From sequence record LR756502.1: a DNA stretch of 64,000 nucleotides; one strand, written 5' to 3'. Below the pieces are notes generated by a model. That model had not been told where the DNA came from and made no database searches. It worked only from the letters and a program-made list of their open reading frames with translations. A program made the translations under genes and the position numbers. This document shows, piece after piece, positions 5,773 to 57,580 of the stretch; positions within the stretch are counted from its first letter, which is position 1, and the number at the start of each line of letters is the position of its first letter.

Positions 5773-6270
5773 ATGACACAAAGTAAAAATCTCAAAGAAG
5801 AAGCTTTTGAAAAATGGAAGCCTATTATACAATCACTTGGTGTGACTGGTAGTAGAGCAGATTGGCTCTCAAAATATACAAATAGTCATCAATCCGGAAT
5901 ATTAGACTCAGAAAATGTAAATAGTTTATATACAGAAGAATCATTCCCATCACTTTTGCCAATCGCTAAACAAGTTGCTTCTAAAACCATTGGATTGGAT
6001 TTAGTTTCAGTATCACCAATCGGTGGTGGTAATTCAGGAGATGAGATTAGGAAAATAGATGCTGAATTAAAATCAGATAATCGTGATGGTAAAATTGACT
6101 CGATAATTGAGGGAACGGAATATGTTGAGAAAACAAGAGAAGATCATCCAGATTATATAAAACCAAAAGGACCAAGTGGTGCGCTATTTTATCTTGACTA
6201 CCAATATGGTAGTACATCTTCCCCTATTACTACTAGCATTGATGAAGATAAATTAAAAAGAATAATATGA
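5773..6270 (+). CDS. truncated gp23-like major capsid N-terminal fragment with an inserted RxxKI segment
   Basis: EKWKPII and PSLLPIAKQVASKTIGLDLVSVSPI...GPSGALFYLDYQYG align by eye to T4 gp23 NKWKPLL and VRRAIPNLIAFDICGVQPMNSPTGQVFALRAVYG; only 165 aa. Confidence 0.7.
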   Translation: MTQSKNLKEEAFEKWKPIIQSLGVTGSRADWLSKYTNSHQSGILDSENVNSLYTEESFPSLLPIAKQVASKTIGLDLVSVSPIGGGNSGDEIRKIDAELKSDNRDGKIDSIIEGTEYVEKTREDHPDYIKPKGPSGALFYLDYQYGSTSSPITTSIDEDKLKRII

Positions 6271-6464
6271 GATTTGTAAGTCCAGGTGTTTATACCAAAG
6301 AAGTAGATATTTCTGGGTATAGTATTTCAAAGAACCAAATTAGGAGAGGTAAAATATGTCGACTATTGGGTATAAAAAACACCAACCCAATTGTTGGTAT
6401 GTCTTATGGATGTACAAGTGGATTTATCTTATCCAATACTTACGAAGAATTTAAAAATACCTAA
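6267..6464 (+). CDS. mini-protein with a tail-sheath (gp18-like) N-terminal motif plus RxxKI motif
   Basis: MRFVSPGVYTKEVDIS matches the SPGVYxxExD start of contractile tail sheath proteins; followed by RRGKICRLL; 65 aa. Confidence 0.65.
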   Translation: MRFVSPGVYTKEVDISGYSISKNQIRRGKICRLLGIKNTNPIVGMSYGCTSGFILSNTYEEFKNT

Positions 6465-6478
6465 GGAACATAATGAAG

Positions 6479-6487
6479 TAATATATA
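6479..6487 (+). promoter_or_regulatory. TAATATATA element
   Basis: Exact motif 5 nt before the ATG at 6493. Confidence 0.55.
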
Positions 6488-6492
6488 ACTTC

Positions 6493-6846
6493 ATGATATT
6501 TAATGTTTATTTGGTGTGTGCTGAAATTGGTGACGAGAAATTGTATAAAATAGGATATACTAGAAGGGAGATAGAGGTTAGAATTAAGGAATTCAAAACC
6601 GGAAATGCTTCTGATTTCTTTATAGTTGATTCCTTTCAATCAAAATGGGGAACTAAAATAGAAGCAAGACTACATAAGGCTTTTAATCATAAAAGAATAA
6701 ATGGTGAATGGTTTTGTTTGAATGATGGTGATATATTTGAATTTAAGAGACTTTGTGAAATGATTCATAATAATTTTGAAATGATGTTGGAAGATAATAC
6801 TTATATAATGGATAGAGTGGAAAAAGGAAAACAAAGAATATTTTAA
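6493..6846 (+). CDS. GIY-YIG family (T5orf172/MUG113-like) nuclease
   Basis: YKIGYT..IEVR, EARLH..F..KRINGEWF motifs; start moved from 6391 to the ATG after the TAATATATA element. Confidence 0.8.
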   Translation: MIFNVYLVCAEIGDEKLYKIGYTRREIEVRIKEFKTGNASDFFIVDSFQSKWGTKIEARLHKAFNHKRINGEWFCLNDGDIFEFKRLCEMIHNNFEMMLEDNTYIMDRVEKGKQRIF

Positions 6847-6848
6847 TT

Positions 6849-7310
6849 ATGAGTGACTTGGAAATAAAAAACTTTATTTATAAAATAAAGGACTACAATA
6901 TACGCAATCATTGTTTTGATATATATATTTCTTATCAATGGAAATATGGAAGACCAGAAACTTATAAAGAGATATATAAAAGAGTAAATAGAATATCAAA
7001 AATAAAAAACATAATGTCAAAAGAAATAATACATGATGGGTCTCAACCATTAGATTGGAGTAAAATTGGACCTCAAGATAGGATAAAATTTATAATTCCA
7101 GTTGGTGGACTGTCTAAAAATAAATGGTGGCAGTTTTGGAAAAAGGATGATCTTAAGAAATCAGAAGATCAAATCTGTAAATTAATTTATGAGTATAAAG
7201 AAGAAGTTGATTGGGATAATAATACTGGTGAACTAACAATCAATAGAAAATTACCATATAATAAAGAATATTGGTTTCCTGATAATAATAGTCATAAACT
7301 ATACGAATAA
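6849..7310 (+). CDS. protein carrying a gp20-like portal fragment plus RxxKI motif
   Basis: GPQDRIKFIIPVGGLSK..K...YKEEVDWDNNTGE...KEYWFP aligns by eye to the T4-like portal segment APERRIFYIDVGNLPK.K...YRNKLVYDA.TGE...EDFWLP; 153 aa. Confidence 0.65.
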   Translation: MSDLEIKNFIYKIKDYNIRNHCFDIYISYQWKYGRPETYKEIYKRVNRISKIKNIMSKEIIHDGSQPLDWSKIGPQDRIKFIIPVGGLSKNKWWQFWKKDDLKKSEDQICKLIYEYKEEVDWDNNTGELTINRKLPYNKEYWFPDNNSHKLYE

Positions 7311-7326
7311 AAATAAATATAACAAT

Positions 7327-7596: not shown

Positions 7597-7616
7597 TTGC
7601 TAAAAATATAACACAA

Positions 7617-9133: not shown

Positions 9134-9139
9134 AATAAT

Positions 9140-9148
9140 TATATATTA
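9140..9148 (-). promoter_or_regulatory. TAATATATA element
   Basis: Exact motif on the - strand, 6 nt before the start at 9133. Confidence 0.55.
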
Positions 9149-9151
9149 ATT

Positions 9152-10894: not shown

Positions 10895-10905
10895 ATATTT
10901 TTTAT

Positions 10906-10913
10906 TATATTTG
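10906..10913 (+). promoter_or_regulatory. Bacteroidota-type -7 element TATATTTG
   Basis: Matches TAnnTTTG, 5 nt before the ATG at 10919; no clear -33. Confidence 0.45.
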
Positions 10914-10918
10914 TAATT

Positions 10919-11134
10919 ATGATTGAGTTGCCAAACGTAAAGGATTTGATGTATCTTATTGAAATCTTTGATAGGAAAAAATTAGCTATATATAGTCAGA
11001 AATATCAAGATGCTGCTAAGTTAAGAGATATAGAGAGGGATTTTCTTAAAAGGTTTGGTATGTCATTTTCATCAACAAGACAAGATATTGTTATCTTGAT
11101 AAGAGAATTAAAATTGAATGATGTAATTGGTTAG
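10919..11134 (+). CDS. UVR-motif mini-protein with a C-terminal RxxKL motif
   Basis: AIYSQKYQDAAKLRDIE (UvrB/C-type coiled coil); ends RELKLNDVIG. Confidence 0.65.
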   Translation: MIELPNVKDLMYLIEIFDRKKLAIYSQKYQDAAKLRDIERDFLKRFGMSFSSTRQDIVILIRELKLNDVIG

Positions 11135-12663
11135 CAGTTATCACAGCTTATCATACCATTACCATTACACTCTTCACAGGTAGTTCTTCCATTTCCATCA
11201 CAATTGTCACATTCAACCTCACCATCACCACCACATTTTGAGCATTTTATTATACCCTCAACACAATAGGGGTTATTACATGATATAGATATTCCATCAT
11301 CTTCAATTTTTCCTGTTCCTTTACACACTGCACATGCCTCCTCACCATCACCACTGCATTTATCACACTCTATTACTTCATTTCCATCACAAACAGAGCA
11401 TATAACATCTCCTCTTCCATCACATTCACCGCACTCATATTCACCATCACCACCACATCTTTCACACTCACCTCCAGAGTACCCGCCATCAGTATCTTCT
11501 AAGGTAAGAGAACCACTACTTCTGCAATTTCCAATCTCACCTTTTTCTGGATTATAGTATTTTAGTGTATCTAAATATGGGTAATTATCATATCTTCTTG
11601 GTTTTAGTTTAACATCTAATTCTATCCTTCTTACACTTCCATCTGGTGCAAATGTATCATTTCCTGTTCCACTTGAGTTTTGATATTTGCAATAGAATCC
11701 ATTCTTTTTAGCATATTGTCTAAATAGTTCAACATCGGAATCTTCGTGTGTGTAGATTCTATCCATGAACATCTTGTCATCATTAAGCTTCCAAACTAAA
11801 GCTCTTCCCCTTATTTTATTTGGACTATCCGGTGATTTGTATATAACTAGGCTAATCTTATCTGGATTTGAACAATAGATGTCAAAGAAATCATCACTTA
11901 CATTAGCCATACAAGATGATCCAAGAGTACCTCTATCAGTACCTTTTTCATATCTTTCATAATCATACCACTCAGCTATACTATATCCATTAACTATTTC
12001 GAAGTTTGAGAATATATCATTTATAGAATCAATTGTTGCTTTGTATTTATTTACAAAATCTTCAATTTCTTTATCCGATATTTCTACCTTTGCTGTGTTT
12101 AATAATGTTCTAACTCCTCTTCCAACTCTTATAATTTGTCTACTTATTTTAAAGAAATCTGAAGGATCTTCTCCACTTCCTAATCTAAGAGCTTCTATGT
12201 TTACTGGGATTGGCTTATATTCTGTATCGTCTGGTATAAATACGACAAATTTCTTTTGACTAACTGGTGATATTACTTCCTTACCAAGGGTACCCATTGT
12301 GCCTATTGGTGGTTCTGTCTCAATTTGCTTTCTCTCTAATTCCAGAGGCTCCCATAGATAATTAAATCTAGAATCAGAGTCTAAGAATTTACCAGTTATT
12401 GAATATCTCCATTTATTTTTGTTATTATCTAATATTTCTTTAACTTTTCTATCTGGAGTGAATGATATTGTATCATTTGCATCACTTATGTCGAAATAGT
12501 TTGATTGAACTGGATAATCTTTATTCTCTATATCTAATAGAGAATCCGATACTGGTCCTCCAATCTTTTTAAGAACCTTTCTAAGCTTTTCAGAGTATTT
12601 AACATCTGATTCAAGAATAAGTTCAAAATTTTCATTTATAAATTCAAAGTACTTCTTCACCAT
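11131..12663 (-). CDS. putative internal head protein with a C-terminal array of CxxCxGxG zinc-finger repeats
   Basis: N-terminus MVKKYFEFINE; central SSCM...GRALVW...MDRIY block; about 10 CxxC units, most followed by xGxG. Confidence 0.7.
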   Translation of the reverse strand: MVKKYFEFINENFELILESDVKYSEKLRKVLKKIGGPVSDSLLDIENKDYPVQSNYFDISDANDTISFTPDRKVKEILDNNKNKWRYSITGKFLDSDSRFNYLWEPLELERKQIETEPPIGTMGTLGKEVISPVSQKKFVVFIPDDTEYKPIPVNIEALRLGSGEDPSDFFKISRQIIRVGRGVRTLLNTAKVEISDKEIEDFVNKYKATIDSINDIFSNFEIVNGYSIAEWYDYERYEKGTDRGTLGSSCMANVSDDFFDIYCSNPDKISLVIYKSPDSPNKIRGRALVWKLNDDKMFMDRIYTHEDSDVELFRQYAKKNGFYCKYQNSSGTGNDTFAPDGSVRRIELDVKLKPRRYDNYPYLDTLKYYNPEKGEIGNCRSSGSLTLEDTDGGYSGGECERCGGDGEYECGECDGRGDVICSVCDGNEVIECDKCSGDGEEACAVCKGTGKIEDDGISISCNNPYCVEGIIKCSKCGGDGEVECDNCDGNGRTTCEECNGNGMISCDNC

Positions 12664-12677: not shown

Positions 12678-12717
12678 ATTGTTATAAACCAAATTGATTA
12701 TTTTTTATATAAAAAGT

Positions 12718-13191
12718 ATGGATAAAATTACAAAAACGTATTTGATAATATCAGATACTACGGATTATCAAAACCCTTTAATTGGTACGCAATCATTCTA
12801 TTATGCTGTGGAACAGTCCACACTCCCAGATTTTAATTTGTCTCCGATTGCAATGAGTCCTAATCATGATGAAATTGTCTTAGTTTTTAATATTGATACT
12901 ACTGAGATATTTAATATGTTTGCGGATTCTAAAAAAAGAAGAAGAGTTGCCTGTGTTGTTCAATTTTGGGGGAATGTTAGTCAGGTATTTATATATATAA
13001 ATCCATTATTGGTAAGTAGAGAGTATTCTTCTCTATTGAGATCTAGATCAACTCTTAGGTTCAGGTTTGATCAGCAATCATTTTCTGAAAAAAGTAAAGA
13101 CAATACTAAATACTGGGTTAGGCAATTAGTACATCATAGAAGAGAAGAAAGGCTTGAGGAATTACTTGGTAATGATATTGATAAGATATGA
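12718..13191 (+). CDS. hypothetical protein with a RxxKI-like motif near the C-terminus
   Basis: REERLEELLG; ATG at 12718 preferred over TTG at 12694. Confidence 0.6.
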   Translation: MDKITKTYLIISDTTDYQNPLIGTQSFYYAVEQSTLPDFNLSPIAMSPNHDEIVLVFNIDTTEIFNMFADSKKRRRVACVVQFWGNVSQVFIYINPLLVSREYSSLLRSRSTLRFRFDQQSFSEKSKDNTKYWVRQLVHHRREERLEELLGNDIDKI

Positions 13192-13400
13192 AGTTTAAAG
13201 TTGGTGATATAGTATCACATGTGAATTCCTTTAATAGATTTTATGTTGTTATTGCTGACTATAAGAATGGTCAGTATGAAGTTGAAGACTATGACCCTAT
13301 ACTTGAAAATAAAGAGAAACATGTTTTTATTGGTAAGTATTTATTGACAAAGTCTTATAGAAGAAACTATGTTATTGATGACCTAATTAATAAGAAATAA
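13188..13400 (+). CDS. small SH3/KOW-like protein with a C-terminal RxxKI-like motif
   Basis: MKFKVGDIV start; ends RRNYVIDDLINKK. Confidence 0.6.
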   Translation: MKFKVGDIVSHVNSFNRFYVVIADYKNGQYEVEDYDPILENKEKHVFIGKYLLTKSYRRNYVIDDLINKK

Positions 13401-13429: not shown

Positions 13430-13636
13430 ATGGCAATACCAATTATGGGTCCAGTTGGACCAATGGGACCTCCCGGAGCTCCTGGATTATCAGTTGATGC
13501 GCTTGTTGAGTATACAGATATTCTATTTAGTTTAATGGGTGTTGATATAACCTTTGATAGATTTCAATCGATGTCTACTGGTGAGAGACTTCAATTTGTA
13601 AGAGATTTAAAAATTAATAAAATAATAAATGAATAA
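13430..13636 (+). CDS. mini-protein with a collagen-like start and C-terminal RxxKI motif
   Basis: GPV-GPM-GPP-GAP-GLS triplets; ends RDLKINKIINE. Confidence 0.65.
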   Translation: MAIPIMGPVGPMGPPGAPGLSVDALVEYTDILFSLMGVDITFDRFQSMSTGERLQFVRDLKINKIINE

Positions 13637-13871
13637 TAATATGATAATTTCTTTTGATCCAGCAAATTCTACTGGAGGCCTTGCTTTATCTCAAGTGGGT
13701 ACTGGTACTAGTTGGGTAAAAATGCCATCTGATAATGATATGGTAGATTTTTGTGAATTAGTTTTAGCTGTATTGGGACATGATATTACGTATCAAGATT
13801 TTCAAAAAATGTCTAAAGTAGAAAGAAATTCTTTACTTAGAGATATAAAAATTAAAAGAGTATTAGACTAA
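13629..13871 (+). CDS. paralog of 13430-13636 with a different N-terminus
   Basis: Shared C-half (LGHDITYQDFQKMS..ER...RDIKIKRVL vs MGVDITFDRFQSMS..ER...RDLKINKII). Confidence 0.65.
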   Translation: MNNNMIISFDPANSTGGLALSQVGTGTSWVKMPSDNDMVDFCELVLAVLGHDITYQDFQKMSKVERNSLLRDIKIKRVLD

Positions 13872-14073: not shown

Positions 14074-14529
14074 ATGGGGTTCGGTAAAAGATACATCAGT
14101 AGAGATACAATAATTAACACACTAGTAAATGGTGGTAGTCTATCAAAACTAAGAAAAGCGGATGCTTTGATAGTTATGGATCCTTGGTCCTATAATTTTT
14201 TTGAAGATTATAACAATGACCAAAAATATATTACAGATAGAGACTTATTACTAGATGACACAAAATATTCATCTTTTCACGAATCAATACACACTCATAA
14301 GAACTTTCAAAATTTAAAAAATCTTCCTAATATTTTAGAAAATCTATATATTTCCCCAAGTTGGGTGGATATATTATTGACATTTGAAATACTTGGTAGT
14401 GATGGAGTTGATGAATCCTCTCGTGGTAAATTTGAAAATCTTAAGAATATCTGCATTGATAAAATTAAAAACTACTATATGGTTGAGTCAAGAAATAAAT
14501 CAATTAGTGAAATAATAAAAAAAGATTAG
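14074..14529 (+). CDS. hypothetical protein with a C-terminal RxxKI-like motif
   Basis: Ends RNKSISEIIKKD. Confidence 0.6.
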   Translation: MGFGKRYISRDTIINTLVNGGSLSKLRKADALIVMDPWSYNFFEDYNNDQKYITDRDLLLDDTKYSSFHESIHTHKNFQNLKNLPNILENLYISPSWVDILLTFEILGSDGVDESSRGKFENLKNICIDKIKNYYMVESRNKSISEIIKKD

Positions 14530-25032: not shown

Positions 25033-25185
25033 ATGAAAGATGTATTTATGAAAGATGTTTATAAGAATCTTGGCCTTGATAGTGTTGGTAGTGACAAAAG
25101 CTACCTTGAAGTTTGGATGAAAATTATTTATGATGGTAGAATAAAAACCAGAAGGATTAACAAAATCAAAAAGATATTAGGTTAA
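25033..25185 (+). CDS. 50-aa protein with a C-terminal RxxKI motif (not in the ORF track)
   Basis: Hand translation MKDVFMKDVYKNLG...KTRRINKIKKILG*. Confidence 0.55.
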   Translation: MKDVFMKDVYKNLGLDSVGSDKSYLEVWMKIIYDGRIKTRRINKIKKILG

Positions 25186-31624: not shown

Positions 31625-32123
31625 GAATAGGAATATAAGAATATCTCAACGTAATACCGAAAATTGTAGATTGGCTTTTGTTAAAAATCTTAAAGATATT
31701 ACTGGATTTGGGTTAAAAGAGGCTAAGGATATCGCTGATAAACTAAATTACTCATTTAACGCTGGTGATAGAATATCAATTACCGTACCGGTCCAATTAT
31801 TAAATGTCCTTGGATCTTCAGACGTTACTACATTAGATTATGATTATTCTATACGAAATTTCACTAGGAAGATTGGTGAGTCTTGTACTGGTAATTATAT
31901 AGTAGATGTTGGAGTTGAGTGGGGTAGAGAGTCAAAATTGCTATCACTTGGTATAGGTTCTGATTCAGATTTCATATCATTCATTAAAAAAATGATTATG
32001 TATAAAAACTCTTCTGATATAGAGGATTTTATTGGTGAGTTGTTGTCTAGTAGAGATAGGGTTGAACTTGAAAAAATTTATAATAAATTAACTGAAAATG
32101 GCAAATGCATTGGTACACTCTAA
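31611..32123 (+). CDS. protein with a ribosomal bL12 (L7/L12) C-terminal-domain-like motif
   Basis: LAFVKNLKDITGFGLKEAKDIAD vs bL12 IAVIKxVRELTGLGLKEAKDLVE; also RESKLLSLGI. Confidence 0.7.
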   Translation: MEQNRNRNIRISQRNTENCRLAFVKNLKDITGFGLKEAKDIADKLNYSFNAGDRISITVPVQLLNVLGSSDVTTLDYDYSIRNFTRKIGESCTGNYIVDVGVEWGRESKLLSLGIGSDSDFISFIKKMIMYKNSSDIEDFIGELLSSRDRVELEKIYNKLTENGKCIGTL

Positions 32124-32494: not shown

Positions 32495-33211
32495 ATGATA
32501 GTTATTGCTAAAAAGGGAACAACTAAACTTGTAAAGGGTGCTCGTTACGAAGTTCGTAGCTTATTTAATTCCACCAACAGGTCTAGGACTAACAGAGTAT
32601 ACCTAAAAGGTATTGGTGGTTATGTTGTTGATAATTTCACCACAACTGATGGACAACCACTGCCTAAAATTGATTGGCAGGAAGCTGCTGTTGTTCCTGA
32701 AAAAAGAATTGAATTTGAAGACTTAAAAGTTAACGATATTATTGTTTGTAAGAGTGATAGATATTCAACCTTAATACAAGGGGCTAAATATAGAATTGTT
32801 GATTTGAAATCTACTACCACACAAGCACCCGGTAAAAAATATATACGTACCGCAAAAAAGGTAAAATTTGAAGGATGTAATCGATACTTTGACTACTCTC
32901 ACTATAGGTTCAGAAAACTCACTATTGACGAGTCTCGTGAATTGCAATTATCTTCCGTATTGGATGATGAAGTAAACTCATGTTCTGTTGATGTAAATAT
33001 TAGAAAAATCGATGCTATTGATAATAAAAATGCCACTTTAATAAAGGTATTAGCTAAATCAATTATTGATGTGTATCGTCATGAGTTGGATGTGGTTGAT
33101 TGGGGTTGTCAAAAATCAGGATCCAAATTAAAAATCACAAGAGATGATTATAAAAAATTACTAAAAATGTCTCTAAAAGATATTCTAAATATTATTGAAA
33201 CATCAAATTAA
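32495..33211 (+). CDS. hypothetical protein with two SH3-like repeats and a RxxKI-like motif
   Basis: KLVKGARYEV / TLIQGAKYRI repeats; RELQLSSVL. Confidence 0.6.
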   Translation: MIVIAKKGTTKLVKGARYEVRSLFNSTNRSRTNRVYLKGIGGYVVDNFTTTDGQPLPKIDWQEAAVVPEKRIEFEDLKVNDIIVCKSDRYSTLIQGAKYRIVDLKSTTTQAPGKKYIRTAKKVKFEGCNRYFDYSHYRFRKLTIDESRELQLSSVLDDEVNSCSVDVNIRKIDAIDNKNATLIKVLAKSIIDVYRHELDVVDWGCQKSGSKLKITRDDYKKLLKMSLKDILNIIETSN

Positions 33212-33733: not shown

Positions 33734-33801
33734 AATTAAATTTTTATAAAAAGGCGTATCCCGAAAAGCCTATCTAGAGTAGGGAAACTAAATTAAATTA
33801 A

Positions 33802-35957: not shown

Positions 35958-36198
35958 GTGTGGTGATATAGTTATTTGTTCTGAAAATCGTATCGGTGGT
36001 ATCATACTTGACCAGAAACTTGTAATTGGTGATAGTTATGAGGTAGTTTCGTCAATATTAGAGTGGCAAAAAACGGATGTTTTGGAACGTCTTGATGTGT
36101 ACTCTCCTTCCGTTGGAAATCTAATGTATCTACCACATTATTTATTCATACCTATTTCTGTTTATAGAGATTCAAAATTAAATGAAATATTAAAATAA
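35947..36198 (+). CDS. SH3/KOW-like protein with a C-terminal RxxKL motif
   Basis: MRYKCGDIVIC start (preferred over TTG 35860); ends RDSKLNEILK. Confidence 0.6.
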   Translation: MRYKCGDIVICSENRIGGIILDQKLVIGDSYEVVSSILEWQKTDVLERLDVYSPSVGNLMYLPHYLFIPISVYRDSKLNEILK

Positions 36199-44754: not shown

Positions 44755-44756
44755 AA

Positions 44757-47933: not shown

Positions 47934-47955
47934 TATTTAGGTCTATTGTTTTTCT

Positions 47956-47964
47956 TATATATTA
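47956..47964 (-). promoter_or_regulatory. TAATATATA element
   Basis: Exact motif heading the 39842-47933 structural operon. Confidence 0.6.
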
Positions 47965-48019
47965 AAATATTCTTATTTCTTTAGACTTGTTTTTTCATTT
48001 TATTTTTGTATTTTTGTAT

Positions 48020-48268
48020 ATGGATAAATTACACATATATAAAGTAACACATATGCATGGTGGATGGGTTACTGACGGATACCCTAATGAGGAGGTTATT
48101 ACTTTTTCAAAGGATGAGGCTATTAATATTGCATTATTTAATAACCCTTCTTGGGATAGAAGAAACACATCTGCATCCGAATTCATTATAAAGGGTTATG
48201 TTATTGAGGTGTATGATGAAAAGTCATATAATCGAGATAAAAATATAGAAAAGCTTGATATTAAATAA
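48020..48268 (+). CDS. hypothetical protein with a C-terminal RxxKI-like motif
   Basis: Ends RDKNIEKLDIK. Confidence 0.55.
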   Translation: MDKLHIYKVTHMHGGWVTDGYPNEEVITFSKDEAINIALFNNPSWDRRNTSASEFIIKGYVIEVYDEKSYNRDKNIEKLDIK

Positions 48269-48284
48269 ATTATCCTTATATTTG
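48254..48284 (+). promoter_or_regulatory. Bacteroidota housekeeping-sigma promoter
   Basis: CTTG, 19-nt spacer, TATATTTG 48277-48284; ATG 4 nt downstream. Confidence 0.7.
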
Positions 48285-48288
48285 TAAT

Positions 48289-50151: not shown

Positions 50152-50333
50152 TGGAAGAAGATAAATTTAAAATATGGTATGACGACCAGCCTAATGATGT
50201 TGTAAATAAAATATCATCCTGTCTAAAGAAATTTGGATTAACTATCGATGAACTCGATGGTGGTGATGGTTTTAATGAATATAAAATAGTAGATGTTTAT
50301 ATCACAAAAATTGATAAAGATGACAACACTTAA
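50151..50333 (+). CDS. hypothetical protein
   Basis: 60 aa, coupled to ligA. Confidence 0.5.
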   Translation: MEEDKFKIWYDDQPNDVVNKISSCLKKFGLTIDELDGGDGFNEYKIVDVYITKIDKDDNT

Positions 50334-50928
50334 AGAGATTAGAAAACATATGCTCGATTATATGAGTTATGTGCCAACAGATGATGAAATCTATGATGAA
50401 GATGGCCATTGTGGTGGTGAATTGTGGAATAATGTAAAGGGATTTTGGGAATACTTTAACACAGATGATGATTTCAGGTTTGTTGTATCATGTCAATGGG
50501 TTAGTGACTTAGACTTAGATGGTGGAAGAGATTATATCTTATCTAGCTCAAAAGTTACTCCACTGTTATTTGACTATATGTATAACACACTTGGTTGGAG
50601 AAGTAAAGACTATGAGAAAGTAATTTTCAATTCTACAAATTTGACCGAGGAATTGGAGGATATGTTTGATAATATACCGGTTATTAGAGATACTAAGATA
50701 GAAGAAATTCTAAAGAAAGAAGTTGATAATGTTGAGTCGTGTTTTGAAAATGAAGATGATTATTGGTCAAATATGATTATTAAATTTCCAATGAATAGGA
50801 AATCCGCATGTGATGGACAAGATAACTTAACTTTCGTTGGATATTCTAAATTGGATGGTAATCCTATATATAAAATGAATTTACCAAATGGATTTGAAGT
50901 TATTAAATCAGTTAATAGTTATTTATAA
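50320..50928 (+). CDS. hypothetical protein with an internal RxxKI motif
   Basis: RDTKIEEIL; ATG at 50320. Confidence 0.6.
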   Translation: MTTLKEIRKHMLDYMSYVPTDDEIYDEDGHCGGELWNNVKGFWEYFNTDDDFRFVVSCQWVSDLDLDGGRDYILSSSKVTPLLFDYMYNTLGWRSKDYEKVIFNSTNLTEELEDMFDNIPVIRDTKIEEILKKEVDNVESCFENEDDYWSNMIIKFPMNRKSACDGQDNLTFVGYSKLDGNPIYKMNLPNGFEVIKSVNSYL

Positions 50929-51419
50929 TGGAATCGGATAAAATTAAAATGGTTAGACTGCAGATAAAAAGAGCAGTAAGTAGTAAAAAATGGAGTACTA
51001 GAAGTGATGCATATTCAAGTCTTGGAGAAATGTACACTTCTTATACTTACATAGACTCAATAAATCCAGATAAGTCAATAAATCCAGATAAATGTGCCAC
51101 TATAAAAATAGTTGTGCGTCCTGGTCGTAAATGGATATCTATTGATGATAATGGTGGTGTCTGTGATAATTATGTGTCTATATCGATAAAAAATGGTACA
51201 TCCTGGTCCGAATTCAACGCCCTTTATTATGGATTCTCAAAGTTTGATATTTTCTTATTAAGAGTCAAGTTATTTTTTAAGGCTATTGATAGTAAAAACC
51301 TTAAATATGAACATAGAAAGCAAATATCAATTGATAAGCTTAGTTTGTGCTCGAGTAGATTTATTGAGGAGAATAGGGGTGATTTTAGAGACGCTACAAT
51401 TGATAAAATTATTAATTAA
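50928..51419 (+). CDS. hypothetical protein with a C-terminal RxxKI-like motif
   Basis: Ends RDATIDKIIN; contains an 18-nt tandem duplication (SINPDK x2). Confidence 0.6.
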   Translation: MESDKIKMVRLQIKRAVSSKKWSTRSDAYSSLGEMYTSYTYIDSINPDKSINPDKCATIKIVVRPGRKWISIDDNGGVCDNYVSISIKNGTSWSEFNALYYGFSKFDIFLLRVKLFFKAIDSKNLKYEHRKQISIDKLSLCSSRFIEENRGDFRDATIDKIIN

Positions 51420-51433
51420 TAAAAAATAAAAAT

Positions 51434-51826
51434 ATGTTTATACTTGGGTTAATTATTGGATTTGTTGCTGGTATTGTATCAGTGATTTTCGCACATAAAT
51501 GGGTAAAAATTAAAAGTAAGAACGATAGTATTGTCTACTCTAGAAGAGGTTTATACTATCAGGATTATAATATATCACAAGGTGGTGTACCAGGTGGTAC
51601 CCTCTCGGTTACTTTTGAGGTTGGTGAGATTGATTATAGTGATACAAAGTCTAAGATCGAAGTAATATCAATTAAGACGAATAGGTCTGAATATAATAAG
51701 AGCTCTGATGATTTAGAAAGGGTTACTAAAATGGCTGATCAGTCTTGGGTAGATTCCAAAGAAATTGAATGGATACAATCAGCTAGTAAGAGTAGAAATG
51801 ATAAAATTGATAAAATATTAGCATAA
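51434..51826 (+). CDS. membrane-anchored protein with a C-terminal RxxKI motif
   Basis: N-terminal TM helix; ends RNDKIDKILA. Confidence 0.65.
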   Translation: MFILGLIIGFVAGIVSVIFAHKWVKIKSKNDSIVYSRRGLYYQDYNISQGGVPGGTLSVTFEVGEIDYSDTKSKIEVISIKTNRSEYNKSSDDLERVTKMADQSWVDSKEIEWIQSASKSRNDKIDKILA

Positions 51827-52566
51827 TGAGAGAGGAATTAGTAAAAATATACCAAGACACAAAACAAATATGTTCTGGTATACCAGTACCCAAAAGTGAA
51901 AAGTTTAACTGGGACACTGATGAAATTTATACAAATTACAATTACAATACAAAAAAAGCTGGAAATATTATTGTTGAACCAATGGATACGGTATCAGCAC
52001 TTGTAAAATATAGTAAAAGTGGAAAGACTGCTGTTCTGAATATGGCGTCCGCCAAGAGAAAAGGTGGTGGTGTTGAGAATGGTGCTATGGCACAAGAAGA
52101 ATGTCTTTTCAGATGTTCTAATCTATTCACAATATCAGATGATTTTTACCCACTTAGTGATTATCATTACATTTATACCTATGATGCGACTTTTATAAAG
52201 GACGTTAACTATGGTGTTATGCAACCAGTAACTGCTGACGTAATAACAATTCCAGCAATAAACTTAAACGGATCTCACATTGATTTTTCCCAGCCAGGAT
52301 TCAATGATCAATATGAGAGTGTAATATTGGATAAAATGTTTTGGATGATAAACTCCGCTATTATGAGTGGTTGTGATAATATTATACTTGGTGCTTGGGG
52401 ATGTGGAGTATTCAAAAATGATCCAAATGTTGTATCTAGACTATTCAAAGAGGTATTAGAAGGTGGTTTAAAAGACTCTTTTAATAATGTAGTATTTGCT
52501 GTTATTAATGATAGAAATTCGGTTGGTAATAATTACGAGATATTTAAAAAAACTTTAGAAAATTAA
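51826..52566 (+). CDS. TIGR02452-type bacterial PARG/macrodomain ADP-ribose hydrolase
   Basis: VLNMAS...GGGVENGAMAQEECLFRCSNL; ILGAWGCGVFKNDP. Confidence 0.88.
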   Translation: MREELVKIYQDTKQICSGIPVPKSEKFNWDTDEIYTNYNYNTKKAGNIIVEPMDTVSALVKYSKSGKTAVLNMASAKRKGGGVENGAMAQEECLFRCSNLFTISDDFYPLSDYHYIYTYDATFIKDVNYGVMQPVTADVITIPAINLNGSHIDFSQPGFNDQYESVILDKMFWMINSAIMSGCDNIILGAWGCGVFKNDPNVVSRLFKEVLEGGLKDSFNNVVFAVINDRNSVGNNYEIFKKTLEN

Positions 52567-52574
52567 AATTAAAA

Positions 52575-52925
52575 ATGAAAACTATGATAGAGATGGATTA
52601 CACAAAAATTAGAGGCAAATGGGACAATATTGATCAAACATTGAAGACTATAATAGAGAATAAATTCGATTATATAGTCGAGGACTTGGAGTGTGGTGAA
52701 GTTGTTGCTACTAAGGTAAATACACCATTTATTTTAGCAGATAATGAATTTGATTTAAGAGAGGGAAATAATGACAGGGAATCATTAAATGTCTATATTA
52801 CAGAACAAGGATCATTTACTGGTGGAGGATTCTATGATATCTATGAGGTTGTTGATAAAACAAAACCTGCGTTGATATTACATGGAAATGGAGAAGAGGG
52901 GTATAACATTTTTATCTTGAACTAA
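52575..52925 (+). CDS. hypothetical protein
   Basis: 116 aa acidic ORF. Confidence 0.55.
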   Translation: MKTMIEMDYTKIRGKWDNIDQTLKTIIENKFDYIVEDLECGEVVATKVNTPFILADNEFDLREGNNDRESLNVYITEQGSFTGGGFYDIYEVVDKTKPALILHGNGEEGYNIFILN

Positions 52926-52926
52926 T

Positions 52927-53439
52927 ATGGGATGCGATATACATTTTTTTGTAGAAAAATATTCTACAGATAATTACGAAGGTCCAAAAGACCTACAGGA
53001 GGATAGAGAAGAGAAACTAGGTGTCGTTTTGTCAGATGGTAAGTTTGAGCCAAGATGGATAACCGCTGATAAGTGGGTATATGAAAATCCATATGGAGAT
53101 GGATCTGAGTGGAGTGTAGATTATAATACTAGATTCTATAATGGTAGAAATTATTATTTATTCGGAGTTCTCGCTGGTGTGAGGGGAGATACTAATATTA
53201 TTTCTGAGCCTAGGGGTGTACCTGATGATGCTTCTTATGCATATAAGAAAGAAGTGGAAAGATGGGATGGTGATGGTCATTCAAATTCATACTATACTCT
53301 AGATGAATTATTAGCAGTTGATTGGGATAAAATAAATACTGATGGTTGGATAGATGAATGGCTGAATACCATTGAGAATATGAAAAAAATTGATCCAGAT
53401 CCAAGTAAAGTAAGATGTGTATTCTTTTTTGATAACTAA
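52927..53439 (+). CDS. conserved phage protein with an inserted RxxKL segment
   Basis: MGCDIH.FVE...RNY.LF..LAGVRG...PRG.PDDAS...H..SY.TL.EL family pattern; REEKLGVVL near the N-terminus. Confidence 0.7.
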   Translation: MGCDIHFFVEKYSTDNYEGPKDLQEDREEKLGVVLSDGKFEPRWITADKWVYENPYGDGSEWSVDYNTRFYNGRNYYLFGVLAGVRGDTNIISEPRGVPDDASYAYKKEVERWDGDGHSNSYYTLDELLAVDWDKINTDGWIDEWLNTIENMKKIDPDPSKVRCVFFFDN

Positions 53440-53662
53440 ACAAACAAACAAGTTAATAGGACCGATTGTCAGTTTTGGAAAAATTTAAAATACTGGCATA
53501 AATTTTGTAATAAACAGTGGTTATTTAATTTAAAATTAATCTAAACAGAAGATAAACTTTTAGATATATATTTATATAAGATTAGATTAACGGCAATTAA
53601 ATGAATTAAAAAGTATTGAATCTTAGTTAAGGTTCAAAATAAAAAAAAATAAATGGCAAACT

Positions 53663-54265
53663 ATGGAACAATCAAAGGCAATTTTATTTTCCGAACAGGA
53701 AAAGGTCTTTAAAGAGAGAACGGGTAAAGATTTCTCTTCACTTTACACAAAATACTACCCAAAACTAATTTACTTCACCGCTAAAATGTGCAACAATCAG
53801 CAAAAAGCTGAGGACATTTCAACAGATTCATTTCTTATAGCTTTCGAGAAAGTCGAAAAGTATGATAGGGAAAAATCACAATTTTCAACATGGCTATTCA
53901 CGATAGCCAAAAATCTAGTACTACAAGATATTAAAAACTCAAAAAAGACAATGTCATTAGATATTGAACTCGATGAAGAAGGCACAACTATGAAGGATTT
54001 CATGCCAGAAGATGAGAGTGATGAGTATCTACATGAGGTTATTTCAAAGAAATCGGATATAATGAGAAAACATATATCCAATCTAAAGAATCCTTATAAG
54101 AAGGTAATAGAGATGAGAGAAATTAAGAAAATGGCATACAAAGATATTGCTGATGAATTGAGATTAAACTTATCAACAGTGAAGTCACAAATAAGAAATG
54201 GTAGAGCTATTCTAATAAGAGATACTCAGAAGGAATTTGATGATCTTGAGGAAATGCACATGTAA
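53663..54265 (+). CDS. ECF-type sigma-70 RNA polymerase factor
   Basis: Region 2 (AEDISTDSF..AFEK...FSTWLFTIAKN) and region 4 (YKDIADELRLNLSTVKSQIRNGR). Confidence 0.9.
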   Translation: MEQSKAILFSEQEKVFKERTGKDFSSLYTKYYPKLIYFTAKMCNNQQKAEDISTDSFLIAFEKVEKYDREKSQFSTWLFTIAKNLVLQDIKNSKKTMSLDIELDEEGTTMKDFMPEDESDEYLHEVISKKSDIMRKHISNLKNPYKKVIEMREIKKMAYKDIADELRLNLSTVKSQIRNGRAILIRDTQKEFDDLEEMHM

Positions 54266-54436
54266 CAAACAATTAGCAAGGATTTTCAATGCCATTAACA
54301 AAACGCGAAGAAGAAGTATGTCAGCGTTATTGGTGTTGTAATTTCTATGAAGCCCTGTCTTTTAATACTTTCGTAGGGTGGAGAAAACGAAATCTTGCAA
54401 ATTTACTTTTAATTAAAACTAACAACAAAAAAATTT

Positions 54437-55003
54437 ATGTCAGAAGCACTAAAACTCCCTAAGGCTAGGGACTTATTTTTCATCAAACAGGTAGACCAGG
54501 CGTCTATTGGTGATCTAACTCAAAAAATAATTGAAATAAATAAAGATGATGATCATCTTAAAAAGTTATACTCTGTTTATGGCTTGGATTATACTCCAGA
54601 TCCAATAAAAGTATACATAGATTCATATGGTGGGTCGGTATATCAGTGTTTTGGACTACTTTCTGTGATAGAAAGATCTCAAACACCTATTCATACAATT
54701 GTTACTGGATGTGCTATGTCTGCTGGATTTATGATATTGATATGTGGTCATAAGAGATTTGCTCATAAGCTATCAACACCTTTATATCATCAAGTGTCTG
54801 GTGGTGCTTTTGGTACAGCTAAAGAGATGGAAGAGAAGATGGAAGAAGTTAAAAGACTTCAAGGTCAATTGGAAAATATTGTTAAGGATAAAACTAAGAT
54901 ATCAAAGAAGAAATTAAGAGAAATATTTGATAATAAAGTTGACTGGTATATGACTTCAGATGAAGCTGAAGAATTGGGAGTAGTTGACGAAATACTTAAC
55001 TAA
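54437..55003 (+). CDS. clpP: ClpP-family protease subunit
   Basis: YIDSYGGSV, GCAMSAG (Ser), YHQ (His), DWYMTSDEAEELGVVD. Confidence 0.9.
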   Translation: MSEALKLPKARDLFFIKQVDQASIGDLTQKIIEINKDDDHLKKLYSVYGLDYTPDPIKVYIDSYGGSVYQCFGLLSVIERSQTPIHTIVTGCAMSAGFMILICGHKRFAHKLSTPLYHQVSGGAFGTAKEMEEKMEEVKRLQGQLENIVKDKTKISKKKLREIFDNKVDWYMTSDEAEELGVVDEILN

Positions 55004-55004
55004 G

Positions 55005-55337
55005 ATGAAACACATAGAGTTATCAATGCAAAATGGGGAAATGACACTTGTGTCAAATCTTCCTGATGAAGTTAAAGGACTAATAACAGATGACAATGAA
55101 TCTGTTATGGTTATTAACTATCCATTGTCTGATACTAATAACTTAATAATATCACCAGCTTTAGACTGGGATATGGGTGATGAGAATATCAGTAGGTCGA
55201 TTATTAATCTAAAAGTAGTTGCATCTGTTGGTGTGTTTAATGGACCATCTTGTGATGTTTATCAAAAAATAGATGATAATGATTCCGCTTGGATATTTTA
55301 TCAATTAATGGATGAGGCTATTCTAATTAAAATATAA
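55005..55337 (+). CDS. hypothetical protein
   Basis: ATG 1 nt after the clpP stop. Confidence 0.55.
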   Translation: MKHIELSMQNGEMTLVSNLPDEVKGLITDDNESVMVINYPLSDTNNLIISPALDWDMGDENISRSIINLKVVASVGVFNGPSCDVYQKIDDNDSAWIFYQLMDEAILIKI

Positions 55338-56617
55338 TGGATATTGAGTCATTAGCTAGAAAGGCTATTAATATAATAAAAGAATCCTGGACACTACCGG
55401 AAAGTGGATTCATTGCTGGTGGATCAATTTCAAATATAATATGGGAAATTGTATCTGGTAACAAGGCTATTGTTAATGATATTGATGTATTTATATTTGA
55501 TGGGATATTGGATAAGGACTCATCTATCGATATTCTATCAAGTGGTAGAAAACTAAGTTATGTTGATAAAGAATTAGTATACCATGAAGATTATGGTGGT
55601 CTTAACTTCTCTACAACTCCAAAGGAATACTATACAATAGATTCATCATCAAAAGATGGAATATTTAACTACATACACTATAGATCAAGTGTATGTGACC
55701 CAACTATTGTTATAAACTCATTTGATATAAACTGTACAACTATTGGATATAGTATAGAAGAAGATAAATTCTATTGGTTAAAGTCGTTTGAGGATTTTTT
55801 AAGTACTGGTGATCTGAAGATTTGTAGCCTAACGACACCTTGTCATACAGCGGTTAGAATATGTAAGAAACAAGATGAGTTAAATGCCAAACTTGCTGAG
55901 TTTGAACATTCATTATTGAGTTATTGTATAGGAAGCAGATTTCTAGATACTAATAAAACAAAATTTAGCACTAGATATTCAGATATGTTTGATAAGTATA
56001 GTGATAAAATGCCAAAGTATATAAAGGTTAGACAAGAGGAATCAGAAGAATTTCTAAAAACAAAGGGTATTGATATTGAATTATACACACTTTTTATTAA
56101 AAATGATATAAGTGTTGATGCGCTTTTTGAAGATCATGGGTCATTAATATTTAATGACCCAAATATATCAAAGATCTTTAGTTCTAAACACTTCTTGTTC
56201 TATATGAGAAACATTTATAATAATGATAGGCTAAAACAAATATGGGAAAAAACTAAATACTTTTTCACAACAGAGGATTATATAGATGTTACTATTGTTG
56301 ATAGTGTTAGTGTGGATAGACTCGCTAGGCTTACTGAATATGCACCAAATACAATTGAAAATCTAAGAGGACATAGGATATCAAAACAGCTTGAATTTGT
56401 TAATAAATTATTTGATAGATTTAAGGAAGATCCTATTATTGGAATATCCATACTTGAAAAACACAAACTTGAAGATATTGACCTAGATGACGACTCTTCC
56501 CTATTGGTTCTTGAACTAAGCGTTAGAAAGCTTATAATAAATGATGTAAACATGAAGGCCAATAAGATAGTTAATAAGGATCATGTTGGTATTGACAATG
56601 TATCCGAGTGGTTCTAA
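55337..56617 (+). CDS. nucleotidyltransferase-like protein (poly(A) polymerase/CCA-adding head-like)
   Basis: FIAGGSI...NDIDVF and FDINCTTIG resemble class II NTase GG..RD/DxD and DFTIN motifs. Confidence 0.6.
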   Translation: MDIESLARKAINIIKESWTLPESGFIAGGSISNIIWEIVSGNKAIVNDIDVFIFDGILDKDSSIDILSSGRKLSYVDKELVYHEDYGGLNFSTTPKEYYTIDSSSKDGIFNYIHYRSSVCDPTIVINSFDINCTTIGYSIEEDKFYWLKSFEDFLSTGDLKICSLTTPCHTAVRICKKQDELNAKLAEFEHSLLSYCIGSRFLDTNKTKFSTRYSDMFDKYSDKMPKYIKVRQEESEEFLKTKGIDIELYTLFIKNDISVDALFEDHGSLIFNDPNISKIFSSKHFLFYMRNIYNNDRLKQIWEKTKYFFTTEDYIDVTIVDSVSVDRLARLTEYAPNTIENLRGHRISKQLEFVNKLFDRFKEDPIIGISILEKHKLEDIDLDDDSSLLVLELSVRKLIINDVNMKANKIVNKDHVGIDNVSEWF

Positions 56618-56663
56618 ACTTATTCCTCTGTTTATAATATAATGTAAAAATAAAACAATAAAT

Positions 56664-56984
56664 ATGGTAGCTTTTGTAATAGAATTGAATGATAGTAACT
56701 ATCAAGATATTATCAAAAATGATTTAGTATTAGTTGATATATGGGCTGAATGGTGTGGTCCTTGTAAAATGGTTGCACCTATCGTTGATGAGATTTCAAT
56801 TGACTATCAAGGTCGTTTAACCGTTGGTAAATTGGATGCTGATGCAAACAAAGAAACACTTAGTCAACTTGGTGTTAGAAATATACCAACTCTTCTTCTT
56901 TATAAGAATGGTGAAGTTGTTGATAAATTAGTTGGTGCAGTTTCTAAACAGAAACTATCTGATATGATTAATACACATATCTAA
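56664..56984 (+). CDS. trxA: thioredoxin
   Basis: WAEWCGPCK, NIPTL, LVGA. Confidence 0.95.
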   Translation: MVAFVIELNDSNYQDIIKNDLVLVDIWAEWCGPCKMVAPIVDEISIDYQGRLTVGKLDADANKETLSQLGVRNIPTLLLYKNGEVVDKLVGAVSKQKLSDMINTHI

Positions 56985-57580
56985 TGGATATCGAAAGTAA
57001 AATTAATAACCTTTACCTGGGTAAGAGAATGATAAATCCTTTATTTCAACTCTATGAAATAATTGGTCAATCAGACTTAACTTTGATTGGGTATTCTCAT
57101 AAAGATGAGAGAATAAAAGATGCATTACTTTCCAAAATCAATCCTTTATCGATTGGGAGAGTAAAGGCATCTTTTAGCATTAAACAACATCTGAGAGATA
57201 TTAAAATAGATGGGGTATTATCCGATAAGCCATTTTTAAATGGTAAAGTAATACACATAGACCTTAATGATGTTGAAATTGATAGTGGTGAAGGTAAGTC
57301 AGCTAGCTTGGGTAGAGCTAAGATTCTTCAATCCTTTGTTGAGGAGTTAAGAGAACAATGTATTAGTTTTGGATATAAAGCGATAATGACTTCGGCTTTG
57401 TATCAAACAGCTAATGATACACCGATTCATAATTTTATGGGAGGGAGTGCACCGATGTACGCAAGTGACTTGGTTATTAAATTAAGTGGTGATCTTAAGA
57501 TCATTAAGAATAGATATTGTGGGGACTCTAAAAATTTTGATATATCTACTGATGAATTGAAAAAATTATTGTATATTTGA
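56984..57580 (+). CDS. degenerate RecA/DnaB-like fragment with an internal RxxKI motif
   Basis: IMTSALYQT...GGSAPMYASDLVIKL...IIKNRY resembles the RecA-fold helicase C-terminus; no Walker A; RDIKIDGVL. Confidence 0.5.
   Translation: MDIESKINNLYLGKRMINPLFQLYEIIGQSDLTLIGYSHKDERIKDALLSKINPLSIGRVKASFSIKQHLRDIKIDGVLSDKPFLNGKVIHIDLNDVEIDSGEGKSASLGRAKILQSFVEELREQCISFGYKAIMTSALYQTANDTPIHNFMGGSAPMYASDLVIKLSGDLKIIKNRYCGDSKNFDISTDELKKLLYI

Follow-up and report, generated by a model that had tools for sequence, protein, structure and literature searches.

In the phage genome LR756502.1, 168 of 987 predicted proteins (17%) end in one short peptide, here called the tag, which spans some 10-15 residues and has the consensus K-S-x-Φ-R-[DEN]-x-K-[IL]-[ND]-x-[IL]-[LG]-x-COOH. 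The DNA under study, hereafter the window, is a stretch of 64,000 nucleotides identical to positions 310001-374000 of that genome. An initial annotation of the window described the tag as appended to about 19 unrelated accessory proteins, an undercount because the tag occurs far outside the window as well. We find the motif to be a genuine, modular peptide tag and not a product of chance. It is probably functional and read by one shared partner, in which case it would act as an address or docking signal, appended mainly to small, fast-evolving accessory proteins encoded in non-late, early-type arrays.

The genome and its gene set

LR756502.1, an unannotated 'uncultured phage' record of 642,428 bp, ranks among the four largest circularised genomes in the study of Al-Shayeb et al. 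(2020, PMC7162821); the genomes above 634 kb all belong to the Mahaphage clade, with predicted Bacteroidetes hosts (Al-Shayeb et al. 2020, PMC7162821). Its GC content is about 30%, and Lys, Ile, Asn, Asp and Leu are plentiful. The head genes comprise a T4-like portal, a gp21-like protease and a gp23-like major capsid protein (MCP). Genes were taken as 987 greedy non-overlapping open reading frames (ORFs), covering 95% of the genome, and the window's gene set numbers 83. ORF numbers and coordinates without a prefix are window positions, while those marked 'genome' refer to LR756502.1. Tags were scored with a 15-column position-specific scoring matrix (PSSM) built from the whole genome, with a threshold set at the 99.5% quantile of the per-protein maxima of shuffled proteins, and are called C-terminal when they lie within 8 residues of the C-terminus.

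Consensus and frequency of the tag

Over the whole genome, the PSSM finds 215 sites in 211 proteins, with two copies in some (G274 and G587). With the Arg numbered as position 0, the information of the logo is concentrated in R0, D/N/E1, K3, I/L4, N/D5, I/L7 and L/G8, and reaches upstream to K at -4, S at -3, E at -2 and I/L at -1. Exactly one residue after tag position 8 is the commonest spacing (81 of the 168 C-terminal tags), and 138 of the 168 have zero to three trailing residues. The final residue of the main I-L-x flavour is variable and polar (K, D, N or G). A second flavour, ...K-L-x-x-[LI]-G-[IL]-COOH (LG[IL] below), was found through homolog comparison and occurs in 40 proteins.

The pattern R[DEN]..[IL]..[ILV][IL] is observed 142 times in the whole genome versus 9.7 in shuffles, and 99 times within 8 residues of the C-terminus versus 0.5 in composition-preserving shuffles. 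Within the window's 83 genes, R[DEN].K[IL]..[ILV][IL] occurs nine times, where within-protein shuffles predict 0.10, and R[DEN]..[IL]..[ILV][IL] within 8 residues of the C-terminus also nine times, with 0.045 expected. The comparison with shuffled proteins that had been proposed as a check of the motif was thus carried to the whole proteome, where frequency and C-terminal bias both lie far above the shuffles.

The signal lies in the peptide, as judged from its in-frame bias, its typical codons and its lack of dependence on the downstream gene. The strict motif has 82 matches in coding frames versus 4 in the other five frames. Arg is encoded by AGA, AGG or CGT and Leu by six codons, in genome-typical proportions. 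Median tag scores are 21.0 where the next gene abuts, 20.1 where it is more than 50 nt away and 19.7 where it is convergent. The earlier statement that codons vary synonymously and that conservation is at the protein level is borne out, with codon use close to the genome average except at position 7. Codons at that position, the only deviation from average usage, have A as third base in about 80% of cases genome-wide (ATA 0.78 versus 0.50 genome-wide, GTA 0.67 versus 0.32). The gap to the next gene has a median of -1 nt for tagged genes and 12 nt for others. Mimicry of a phage transfer-messenger RNA (tmRNA) tag is rejected, since neither ARAGORN, run on the whole genome, nor Rfam, run on the window, detected a tmRNA gene; for the same reason the phage's SmpB (57585-58022; PF01668, E 2e-49) would need a host tmRNA.

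Tag instances in the window

All 19 peptides of the initial annotation are present at the ORFs it named, each on the plus strand. Eleven lie 1-7 residues before the stop codon, as its estimate of about 11 near the C-terminus had it, and the others 31-135 residues before it. Seventeen pass the PSSM, whereas those of ORFs 6267 and 31611 fall below threshold, and with the latter (6.3) the bL12-like protein drops out of the list of carriers.

11102..11128, plus strand: C-terminal tag RELKLNDVI; ORF 10919-11134, 71 aa; one residue after the tag; PSSM 18.3
13141..13167, plus strand: C-terminal tag REERLEELL; ORF 12694-13191, 165 aa; seven residues after; PSSM 21.0
13362..13388, plus strand: C-terminal tag RNYVIDDLI; ORF 13188-13400, 70 aa; three residues after; PSSM 18.5
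13601..13627, plus strand: C-terminal tag RDLKINKII; ORF 13430-13636, 68 aa, paralog of ORF 13629-13871; PSSM 23.2
13839..13865, plus strand: C-terminal tag RDIKIKRVL; ORF 13629-13871, 80 aa; PSSM 19.9
14491..14517, plus strand: weak C-terminal tag RNKSISEII; ORF 14074-14529, 151 aa; PSSM 12.1, just above threshold
25153..25179, plus strand: C-terminal tag RINKIKKIL; ORF 25033-25185, 50 aa; PSSM 18.3
36166..36192, plus strand: C-terminal tag RDSKLNEIL; ORF 35860 (or ATG 35947)-36198; PSSM 25.8, the best in the window
48233..48259, plus strand: degenerate C-terminal tag RDKNIEKLD; ORF 47987-48268, 93 aa; PSSM 15.0
51387..51413, plus strand: C-terminal tag RDATIDKII; ORF 50928-51419, 163 aa; PSSM 16.7
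51794..51820, plus strand: C-terminal tag RNDKIDKIL; ORF 51434-51826, 130 aa; passes the PSSM
6082..6108, plus strand: internal tag RDGKIDSII; ORF 5773-6270, paralog of the MCP N-terminus; PSSM 21.3
6990..7016, plus strand: internal motif RISKIKNIM, of uncertain status; ORF 6849-7310; PSSM 14.8
32936..32962, plus strand: internal tag RELQLSSVL; ORF 32495-33211, 238 aa; PSSM 18.1
50686..50712, plus strand: internal tag RDTKIEEIL; ORF 50293-50928, 211 aa; 71 residues after; PSSM 22.7
53005..53031, plus strand: internal tag-like helix REEKLGVVL, a native element of its family; ORF 52927-53439; PSSM 14.5
57194..57220, plus strand: internal tag RDIKIDGVL, between two modules; ORF 56984-57580, 198 aa; PSSM 24.0
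6342..6368, plus strand: rejected, RRGKICRLL; ORF 6267-6464; PSSM 4.8, below threshold
31926..31952, plus strand: rejected, RESKLLSLG; ORF 31611-32123, weak bL12-like match; PSSM 6.3, below threshold
54437..55003, plus strand: context only, divergent ClpP paralog (PF00574, E 7e-27), one of three in the genome
14549..15259, plus strand: context only, DnaJ-like protein directly downstream of a run of tagged genes

Carriers and predicted structures

That the tag sits on unrelated proteins holds genome-wide. With the tag trimmed off, the 168 C-terminal carriers form 158 phmmer clusters, and among them are an HK97 fold, a protein with a transmembrane (TM) segment and a beta domain, a riboflavin kinase and an HNH endonuclease. 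Most carriers have no match in Pfam and PHROGs; those that could be annotated are the riboflavin kinase, a BtpA-like protein and the HNH endonuclease. Carriers are small, with a median of 112 aa, and the tagged share is 28-34% among proteins of 75-150 aa versus 2% among those longer than 300 aa. The latter figure agrees with the reported absence of the tag from core enzymes, as does the lack of tags on the window's Pfam-annotated enzymes. TM-like segments occur in about 10% of carriers, a share equal to that of untagged small proteins.

One tagged family of 250 aa (genome 234417-235202), encoded near the head module, has 103 homologs on contigs of up to 817 kb. Its AlphaFold2 (AF2) model, with a predicted local distance difference test score (pLDDT) of 88.8, adopts an HK97 fold and matches T4-type gp23/gp24 capsid proteins and encapsulins (probability 1.0, E down to 2e-9). 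The tag is predicted to form the distal half of an extra C-terminal helix (239-259). Among 48 sequences of this family, whose bodies are 26-44% identical, four of the eight invariant columns fall in the tag. In the 51434-51826 protein, an N-terminal TM helix and a beta domain are followed by a low-confidence linker and then by the tag, which AF2 models as a separate terminal helix (122-129). In these two unrelated models, therefore, the tag is a terminal helix in which confidence drops toward the end, and contact of this helix with the body is judged from the pLDDT trend alone. A helical wheel has one broad conserved face on which R and K are interspersed with hydrophobic residues. Of the amphipathic docking helix envisaged by the initial annotation, the terminal helix is thus upheld by prediction, but not a simple amphipathic character.

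The same annotation had, by eye, found the tag absent from capsid-targeted proteins, a claim contradicted by ORF 5773, the paralog of the MCP N-terminus, and by the conserved HK97-fold protein, both of which are tagged. MCP itself and the protease/scaffold candidate (G347) carry no tag. Encapsulation peptides of bacterial microcompartments are amphipathic helices set off from the cargo by a linker, and they go together with shell genes (PF00936/PF03319); no such shell protein was matched in general Pfam scans of about 70 proteins, not the whole proteome.

Conservation, internal copies and turnover

When LR756502 is compared with related metagenomic DNA totalling 1 Mb, 46 homolog pairs emerge; the tag is kept, by regular expression, in 35 of them, and the LG[IL] variant accounts for most of the other 11. 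To judge from such alignments, the tag is under strong purifying selection. The sister genome LR745206.1, whose MCP is 76% identical, has 22 of 138 genes tagged in a syntenic 99 kb, and its orthologs of the window carriers retain their tags, including the internal ones of 5773, 32495 and 56984. For instance, the ortholog of 13629 has an identical tag on a body that is 51% identical, and the homolog of 13430 carries RDIKIKRVL. The ortholog of 14074 (40% identity) has no tag and exemplifies tag gain or loss. For ten of the 17 tagged window genes, the compared region of LR745206.1 contains no ortholog. In the 51434 family, seven of eight homologs (40-89% identity) retain the tag, which reads RNDKIDQIL in the sister ortholog, and R121 is invariant; the eighth, the fused protein P0111, has a degenerate copy. 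P0111 is a metagenomic protein of 213 aa that joins a 51434-type body to the C-terminal two-thirds of a 52927-type protein, with the junction at the tag position, and is either a natural fusion or an assembly chimera.

Some internal copies consist of the tag plus a short extension and have homologs that end at the tag; others lie between two modules and are conserved. To illustrate the latter, the tag of 56984 is RDIKINQIL in the sister ortholog, with only 32% identity in the body, and RDIRIEQIL in the syntenic gene of a distant relative, L262 (a 51.6 kb contig from Logan, SRR27675935). The sister ortholog of 32495 has REISLNHIL, which keeps the motif positions on a body 40% identical. No homolog was found for 50293-50928, the carrier of RDTKIEEIL. 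ORF 5773-6270 is the sole paralog of the MCP N-arm: it matches the N-terminal 85 or so residues of MCP (genome 227452) and holds the tag inside an insert of about 45 residues, with RDRKIDSIT in the sister ortholog. ORF 6849-7310 is, like it, a small 'fragment' paralog of a structural gene, in this case the gp20-like portal (genome 222545), whose residues ~277-335 are similar to the C-terminal half of 6849; the latter has no ortholog in the LR745206.1 region compared.

Insertion of the tag into an otherwise conserved domain, as had been suggested for 5773 and 52927, is right for the former and wrong for the latter. The 52927 family has more than 480 homologs, and the motif stands at one internal position in 20 of 20 aligned homologs, with R27 invariant, so that it is a native element. 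This family is uncharacterised (no Pfam match, and a negative PDB sequence search). It has invariant D/H-rich motifs (MGCDIHFF..., GDGHSHSY and ...VRCVFFFDN) and, from its sequence, looks like a metal-dependent enzyme. In relatives, the gene adjoins a sigma-factor gene, an arrangement that is conserved.

The core gene order of L262 is that of window 40528-58022, namely two large genes, a ligase, the 52927-like gene, the sigma factor, a thioredoxin, the 56984-like gene and SmpB. There the ligase is followed directly by the 52927 homolog, and the window's block of small tagged genes is missing. The tagged genes therefore behave as accessory insertions, and the interval 50151-52925 stands out as a hot spot at which accessory genes are inserted.

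Genomic arrangement of tagged genes

Tag density peaks across the circular junction, with 35 of 55 genes tagged at 620-640 kb (minus strand) and 19 of 54 at 0-20 kb (plus strand). A long minus-strand array of tagged genes begins behind a TAnnTTTG box that lies in the junction spacer, and the LG[IL] flavour is nearly confined to the junction block (38 of 40). TAnnTTTG, which we take to be a match to the Bacteroidetes -7 box, is one of two motifs enriched upstream of genes; the other, AATATATA, precedes the portal, prohead protease and MCP. Tagged genes number 20 of 403 in AATATATA units, 48 of 231 in TAnnTTTG units and 91 of 313 in neither, a depletion in the AATATATA units to 5% versus 21-29% elsewhere (Fisher p = 2e-9). 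A host-type promoter box directly upstream of the tagged genes themselves was rejected, as there is no per-gene difference, only one by transcription unit.

The motif (T)TAATATATA is about 16-fold enriched in the intergenic sequence upstream of genes (187 genes), where its usual distance from the start codon is 10-40 nt, with examples upstream of genome 222545, 225272 and 227452. Its position ahead of portal, protease and MCP makes it a candidate for a late promoter of the clade.

Distribution and a lineage shift of the consensus

IMG/VR was searched with a degenerate DNA pattern for the tag. Among the matches listed (at least 124, on about 100 contigs), 90 of 124 are in frame with a stop within 8 codons, and the contigs have GC contents of 0.21-0.40, many being 100-480 kb long. 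In the neighbourhoods of these matches, 185 of 1608 ORFs are tagged, 109 of which fall outside the seed pattern. In cellular genomes, only 2 of 120 matches to that pattern had the C-terminal in-frame signature.

By MCP identity, the relatives of LR756502 are LR745206 (76%), LR756504 and LR756501/3 (51%), LR756500 (36%), the Lak phages (30%) and cultured jumbo phages of Bacteroidetes and others (about 25%). No tags were found in two 50 kb tiles each of LR756501, LR756500, Lak-B5 and Tenacibaculum phage PTm1 by the PSSM, a relaxed pattern and a C-terminus-anchored logo; PTm1 is a cultured model phage, AT-rich like the other three. The 636 kb LR756504, by contrast with these tag-free relatives, is tag-rich: 26 of 146 genes are tagged (0.9 expected), in 16 unrelated clusters, with the consensus [FW]-x-T-[LI]-x-E-[YH]-R-K-x-I-I-x-[DE]-L-[LI]-COOH. 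Relative to LR756502, position 1 has gone from acidic to basic and position 3 from K to I, position 6 is acidic, and the protein ends at position 8. Such a concerted shift across unrelated carriers would be predicted by co-evolution of the tag with one reader, or with itself.

Other features of the window and genome

A DUF805b cis-regulatory RNA motif (Rfam, 39.4 bits; gathering threshold 35.6) lies at 33751-33785, directly 5' of an SPFH/Band-7 gene (33802-35697). Large tRNA arrays begin at 63098-63929 (and span genome 373-435 kb); Rfam finds seven tRNAs at the window end and ARAGORN 46 genome-wide, many in near-duplicate pairs. A 510-aa protein encoded at 11131-12663 (minus strand) has a Cys-rich, CxxCxGxG-like tail and no Pfam match; its family occupies 7-15 places per genome in LR756502, LR745206, LR756504 and LR756501 and has partial relatives in Cellulophaga phages. 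Unusual phage cargo elsewhere in the genome includes a TonB-dependent receptor with Plug and beta-barrel (genome 150950, 683 aa), a PrkA-type kinase (genome 273831, 641 aa) and a glutamate-synthase-domain protein (genome 521487, 506 aa).

Interpretation

We regard it as probable that the tag is a functional, modular element read by one shared partner, which would recognise the conserved face (R0, D1, K3, I/L4, N/D5, I/L7 and L8) together with the near-terminal position. Since this partner appears to co-evolve with the tag, it is most likely phage-encoded. Regarding the single hub that the initial annotation had postulated, the concerted shift in LR756504 argues in its favour, but no hub was identified and the candidates do not track the tag.

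What the partner does can be proposed more tentatively. It is possible, if on balance doubtful, that a single phage-encoded receptor sorts the more than 150 tagged early or accessory proteins to a common destination, with tag and receptor co-evolving into a private code for each lineage; possible destinations are a compartment or assembly built by the phage, the interior of the capsid (for injection) and a dedicated protease. The specific proposal that we favour, though equally tentative, is delivery of early accessory proteins to proteostasis machinery that the phage itself encodes, where their turnover or remodelling would be regulated, the tag serving as a C-terminal recognition signal for an N-domain-less ClpC-type unfoldase, the three ClpP paralogs and DnaK/DnaJ. 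The phage does encode a ClpC/ClpA-type double-AAA+ protein that lacks the N-domain and has a GVGF loop, presumably at the position of the ClpP-docking loop, as well as three ClpP paralogs, a full-length Hsp70 (DnaK) and a DnaJ-like protein. Two of the three flavours of the tag, LG[IL]-COOH and [DE]-L-[LI]-COOH, have nonpolar C-termini.

Several observations weigh against these proposals. No partner was identified, and the ClpC-like, ClpP, DnaK and DnaJ proteins do not track the tag among relatives. By phylogenetic profile, the ClpC-like protein is present in the three tag-rich genomes but also in tag-free LR756501/3 and many cultured jumbo phages, relatives of DnaJ occur in tag-free LR756501 and Lak phages as well, and the window ClpP is closest to one in tag-free LR756500. 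A degron threaded into a pore is at odds with the polar, helical nature of the most conserved residues (R, D, K, N), with the variable or polar last residue of the main flavour and with the existence of conserved internal copies; nor would one expect a degradation signal to be invariant in a capsid-like protein with an HK97 fold. Sequence motifs are the sole basis of the temporal classes, the genes of LR756502.1 are a mechanical ORF call, and the tag-free relatives were sampled over 100 kb each, not as whole genomes. Two further candidates were set aside: the 510-aa multi-copy protein does not track the tag by phylogenetic profile, and the 426-aa ORF beside the window ClpP is not ClpX.

An absence of any tag function, the motif being a product of AT-rich composition, a DNA or RNA signal at gene ends or one diverged family of small proteins, is very improbable. 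At 30% GC, the genome does encode much K, I, N, D and L, a tagged gene more often runs directly into its neighbour than an untagged one does, and position 7 has its A bias. Chance and composition are nevertheless ruled out by the within-protein shuffles (0.5 versus 99), the off-frame counts (4 versus 82), the cellular genomes and the four equally AT-rich relatives (100 kb each) that lack the tag; a DNA-level element, by frame specificity and a free, near-normal use of synonymous codons; an artefact of translational coupling or of ribosome-binding sites, by tags that are equally strong in convergent and distant contexts; and one diverged paralog family, by BLAST/phmmer clustering (158 clusters) and unrelated carrier folds. 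We give little credence to the reading in which the docking site is not a phage protein but a conserved hub of the host, such as the clamp, RNA polymerase, the ribosome, ClpX, Lon or FtsH. The carriers are early-type small proteins, the class that usually targets host machines, their tags are C-terminal like many hub-binding tails, and none of the phage candidates examined tracks the tag. However, a host hub does not predict a consensus shift between related phages unless their hosts differ, and some 170 different proteins binding one host site are hard to explain. Nothing tag-like was found at protein C-termini in cellular genomes, which implies that no host motif is mimicked and weighs against such a hub.

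Loading into the capsid or prohead, in which the tag would dock inside the T4-like HK97-fold shell or its core and many small effectors would be packaged and injected with the DNA, we judge unlikely, although much in the architecture is reminiscent of it. The tag resembles shell-docking tails (80alpha SP, SaPI1 CpmB and encapsulin cargo), and its R0/K3 resembles the basic i/i+3 pair of P22 scaffolding protein; the phage has a T4-like portal, a gp21-like protease and a gp23-like MCP; and both the conserved HK97-fold protein near the head module, with its invariant tag, and the sole MCP N-arm paralog (5773) are carriers. Set against this are the scarcity of tagged genes in units sharing the head-gene upstream motif (5% versus 21-29%), the TM-like segments of about 10% of carriers, including the conserved N-terminal TM helix of the 51434 family, the riboflavin kinase among the carriers, the lack of a tag on MCP and on the protease/scaffold candidate, and a number of cargo species (168) that would be unprecedented. 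A general gp21-type site is also lacking: [LIVM]-x-E stands upstream of the tag in 53 of 168 proteins versus 43±5 in controls, by which a cleavable signal of the T4 type is ruled out. Self-association, with the helices binding each other or a multivalent scaffold in a condensate that needs no enzymatic receptor and would bring the early accessory proteins together in a single assembly or place in the cell, seems to us decidedly unlikely. A homotypic interface would also be expected to shift in concert within a lineage, K3 and D5 around I4 could pair antiparallel to judge from the logo, and both the double copies of G274 and G587 and the tolerance of internal copies would fit. Two and a half helical turns are, however, short for a stable coiled coil, pairing between helices has no need of the extreme C-terminal preference (81 of 168 with one trailing residue), and there is no direct evidence for it.

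If one receptor reads the tag, it offers a single handle on more than 150 function-unassigned proteins in the largest known phages and would show how huge phages organise, time or deliver their accessory arsenal. The tag would then also be a compact, portable means of protein targeting, with lineage variants that amount to a natural specificity swap. Should the proteins indeed be sorted by it, the tag would become the first sorting signal on a proteome scale to be described for a bacterial virus. Metagenomic fragments of this phage clade can also be recognised by the tag, which makes a simple sequence marker.

Comparison with known systems

Single systems that use short C-terminal address peptides are known already, among them encapsulin cargo, scaffolding proteins and degrons. 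No prior description of this tag was found in the searchable literature, nor of one shared by about one sixth of a phage proteome. A purely conceptual resemblance is to peroxisomal targeting signal 1 (PTS1), the C-terminal signals of Dot/Icm type IV effectors and the poxvirus PRANC/F-box-like C-terminal domains, in which one signal occurs on tens to hundreds of unrelated proteins and has a single receptor; like these, the tag is a short C-terminal signal on many fast-evolving accessory proteins, but organisms, sequences and receptors differ, and nothing here points to a peroxin, a type IV coupling protein or an SCF component. The capsid-targeting sequence (CTS) of T4 internal proteins is N-terminal and is removed at [LI]-x-E. 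It too is a short peptide on unrelated proteins, in a phage with a T4-type head and a gp21-type protease, whereas the present tag is C-terminal and has no enriched cleavage motif upstream.

C-terminal degrons of AAA+ proteases (ssrA and the ClpX C-motifs) share the near-terminal position, and LR756502 encodes a ClpC-type unfoldase, three ClpPs and SmpB. Two flavours end in nonpolar residues, LG[IL]-COOH (40 proteins) and that of LR756504, while the main I-L-x flavour ends in K, D, N or G. The tag differs from them in its conserved polar helical residues and its conserved internal copies, and the Clp genes are not specific to tag-bearing genomes.

In Family 1 encapsulin systems, cargo carries short C-terminal targeting peptides with the consensus SDGSLGIGSLKRS, for which the receptor is the HK97-fold shell. 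The tag is likewise a short C-terminal address on unrelated proteins (168 here, within 8 residues of the end), and the phage has an HK97-type MCP and a small HK97-fold paralog. It departs from the SDGSLGIGSLKRS or GSL-type consensus in its logo, R-[DEN]-x-K-[IL]-[ND]-x-[IL]-[LG], and its predicted helicity. Encapsulin cargo genes lie beside an untagged shell gene, unlike the roughly 170 carriers here, which are scattered across 640 kb, and the one small HK97-fold protein that was found carries the tag itself.

Scaffolding tails are similar in architecture. The last 16 residues of the 80alpha scaffolding protein (SP) and of SaPI1 CpmB comprise an amphipathic helix of 11 residues and a hook with the RIIK motif, which binds the capsid N-arm; R/K and I residues are essential there. 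The P22 scaffolding protein uses R293 and K296, a basic i/i+3 pair. In LR756502 there is likewise a C-terminal helix, as predicted by AF2, with few trailing residues (0-3 in 138 of 168) and with R/K and I among its conserved positions. Scaffolding tails, however, belong to one or two late proteins, whereas the tag is found on about 17% of the proteome, mostly in non-late units, and its carriers include membrane-anchored proteins and enzymes.

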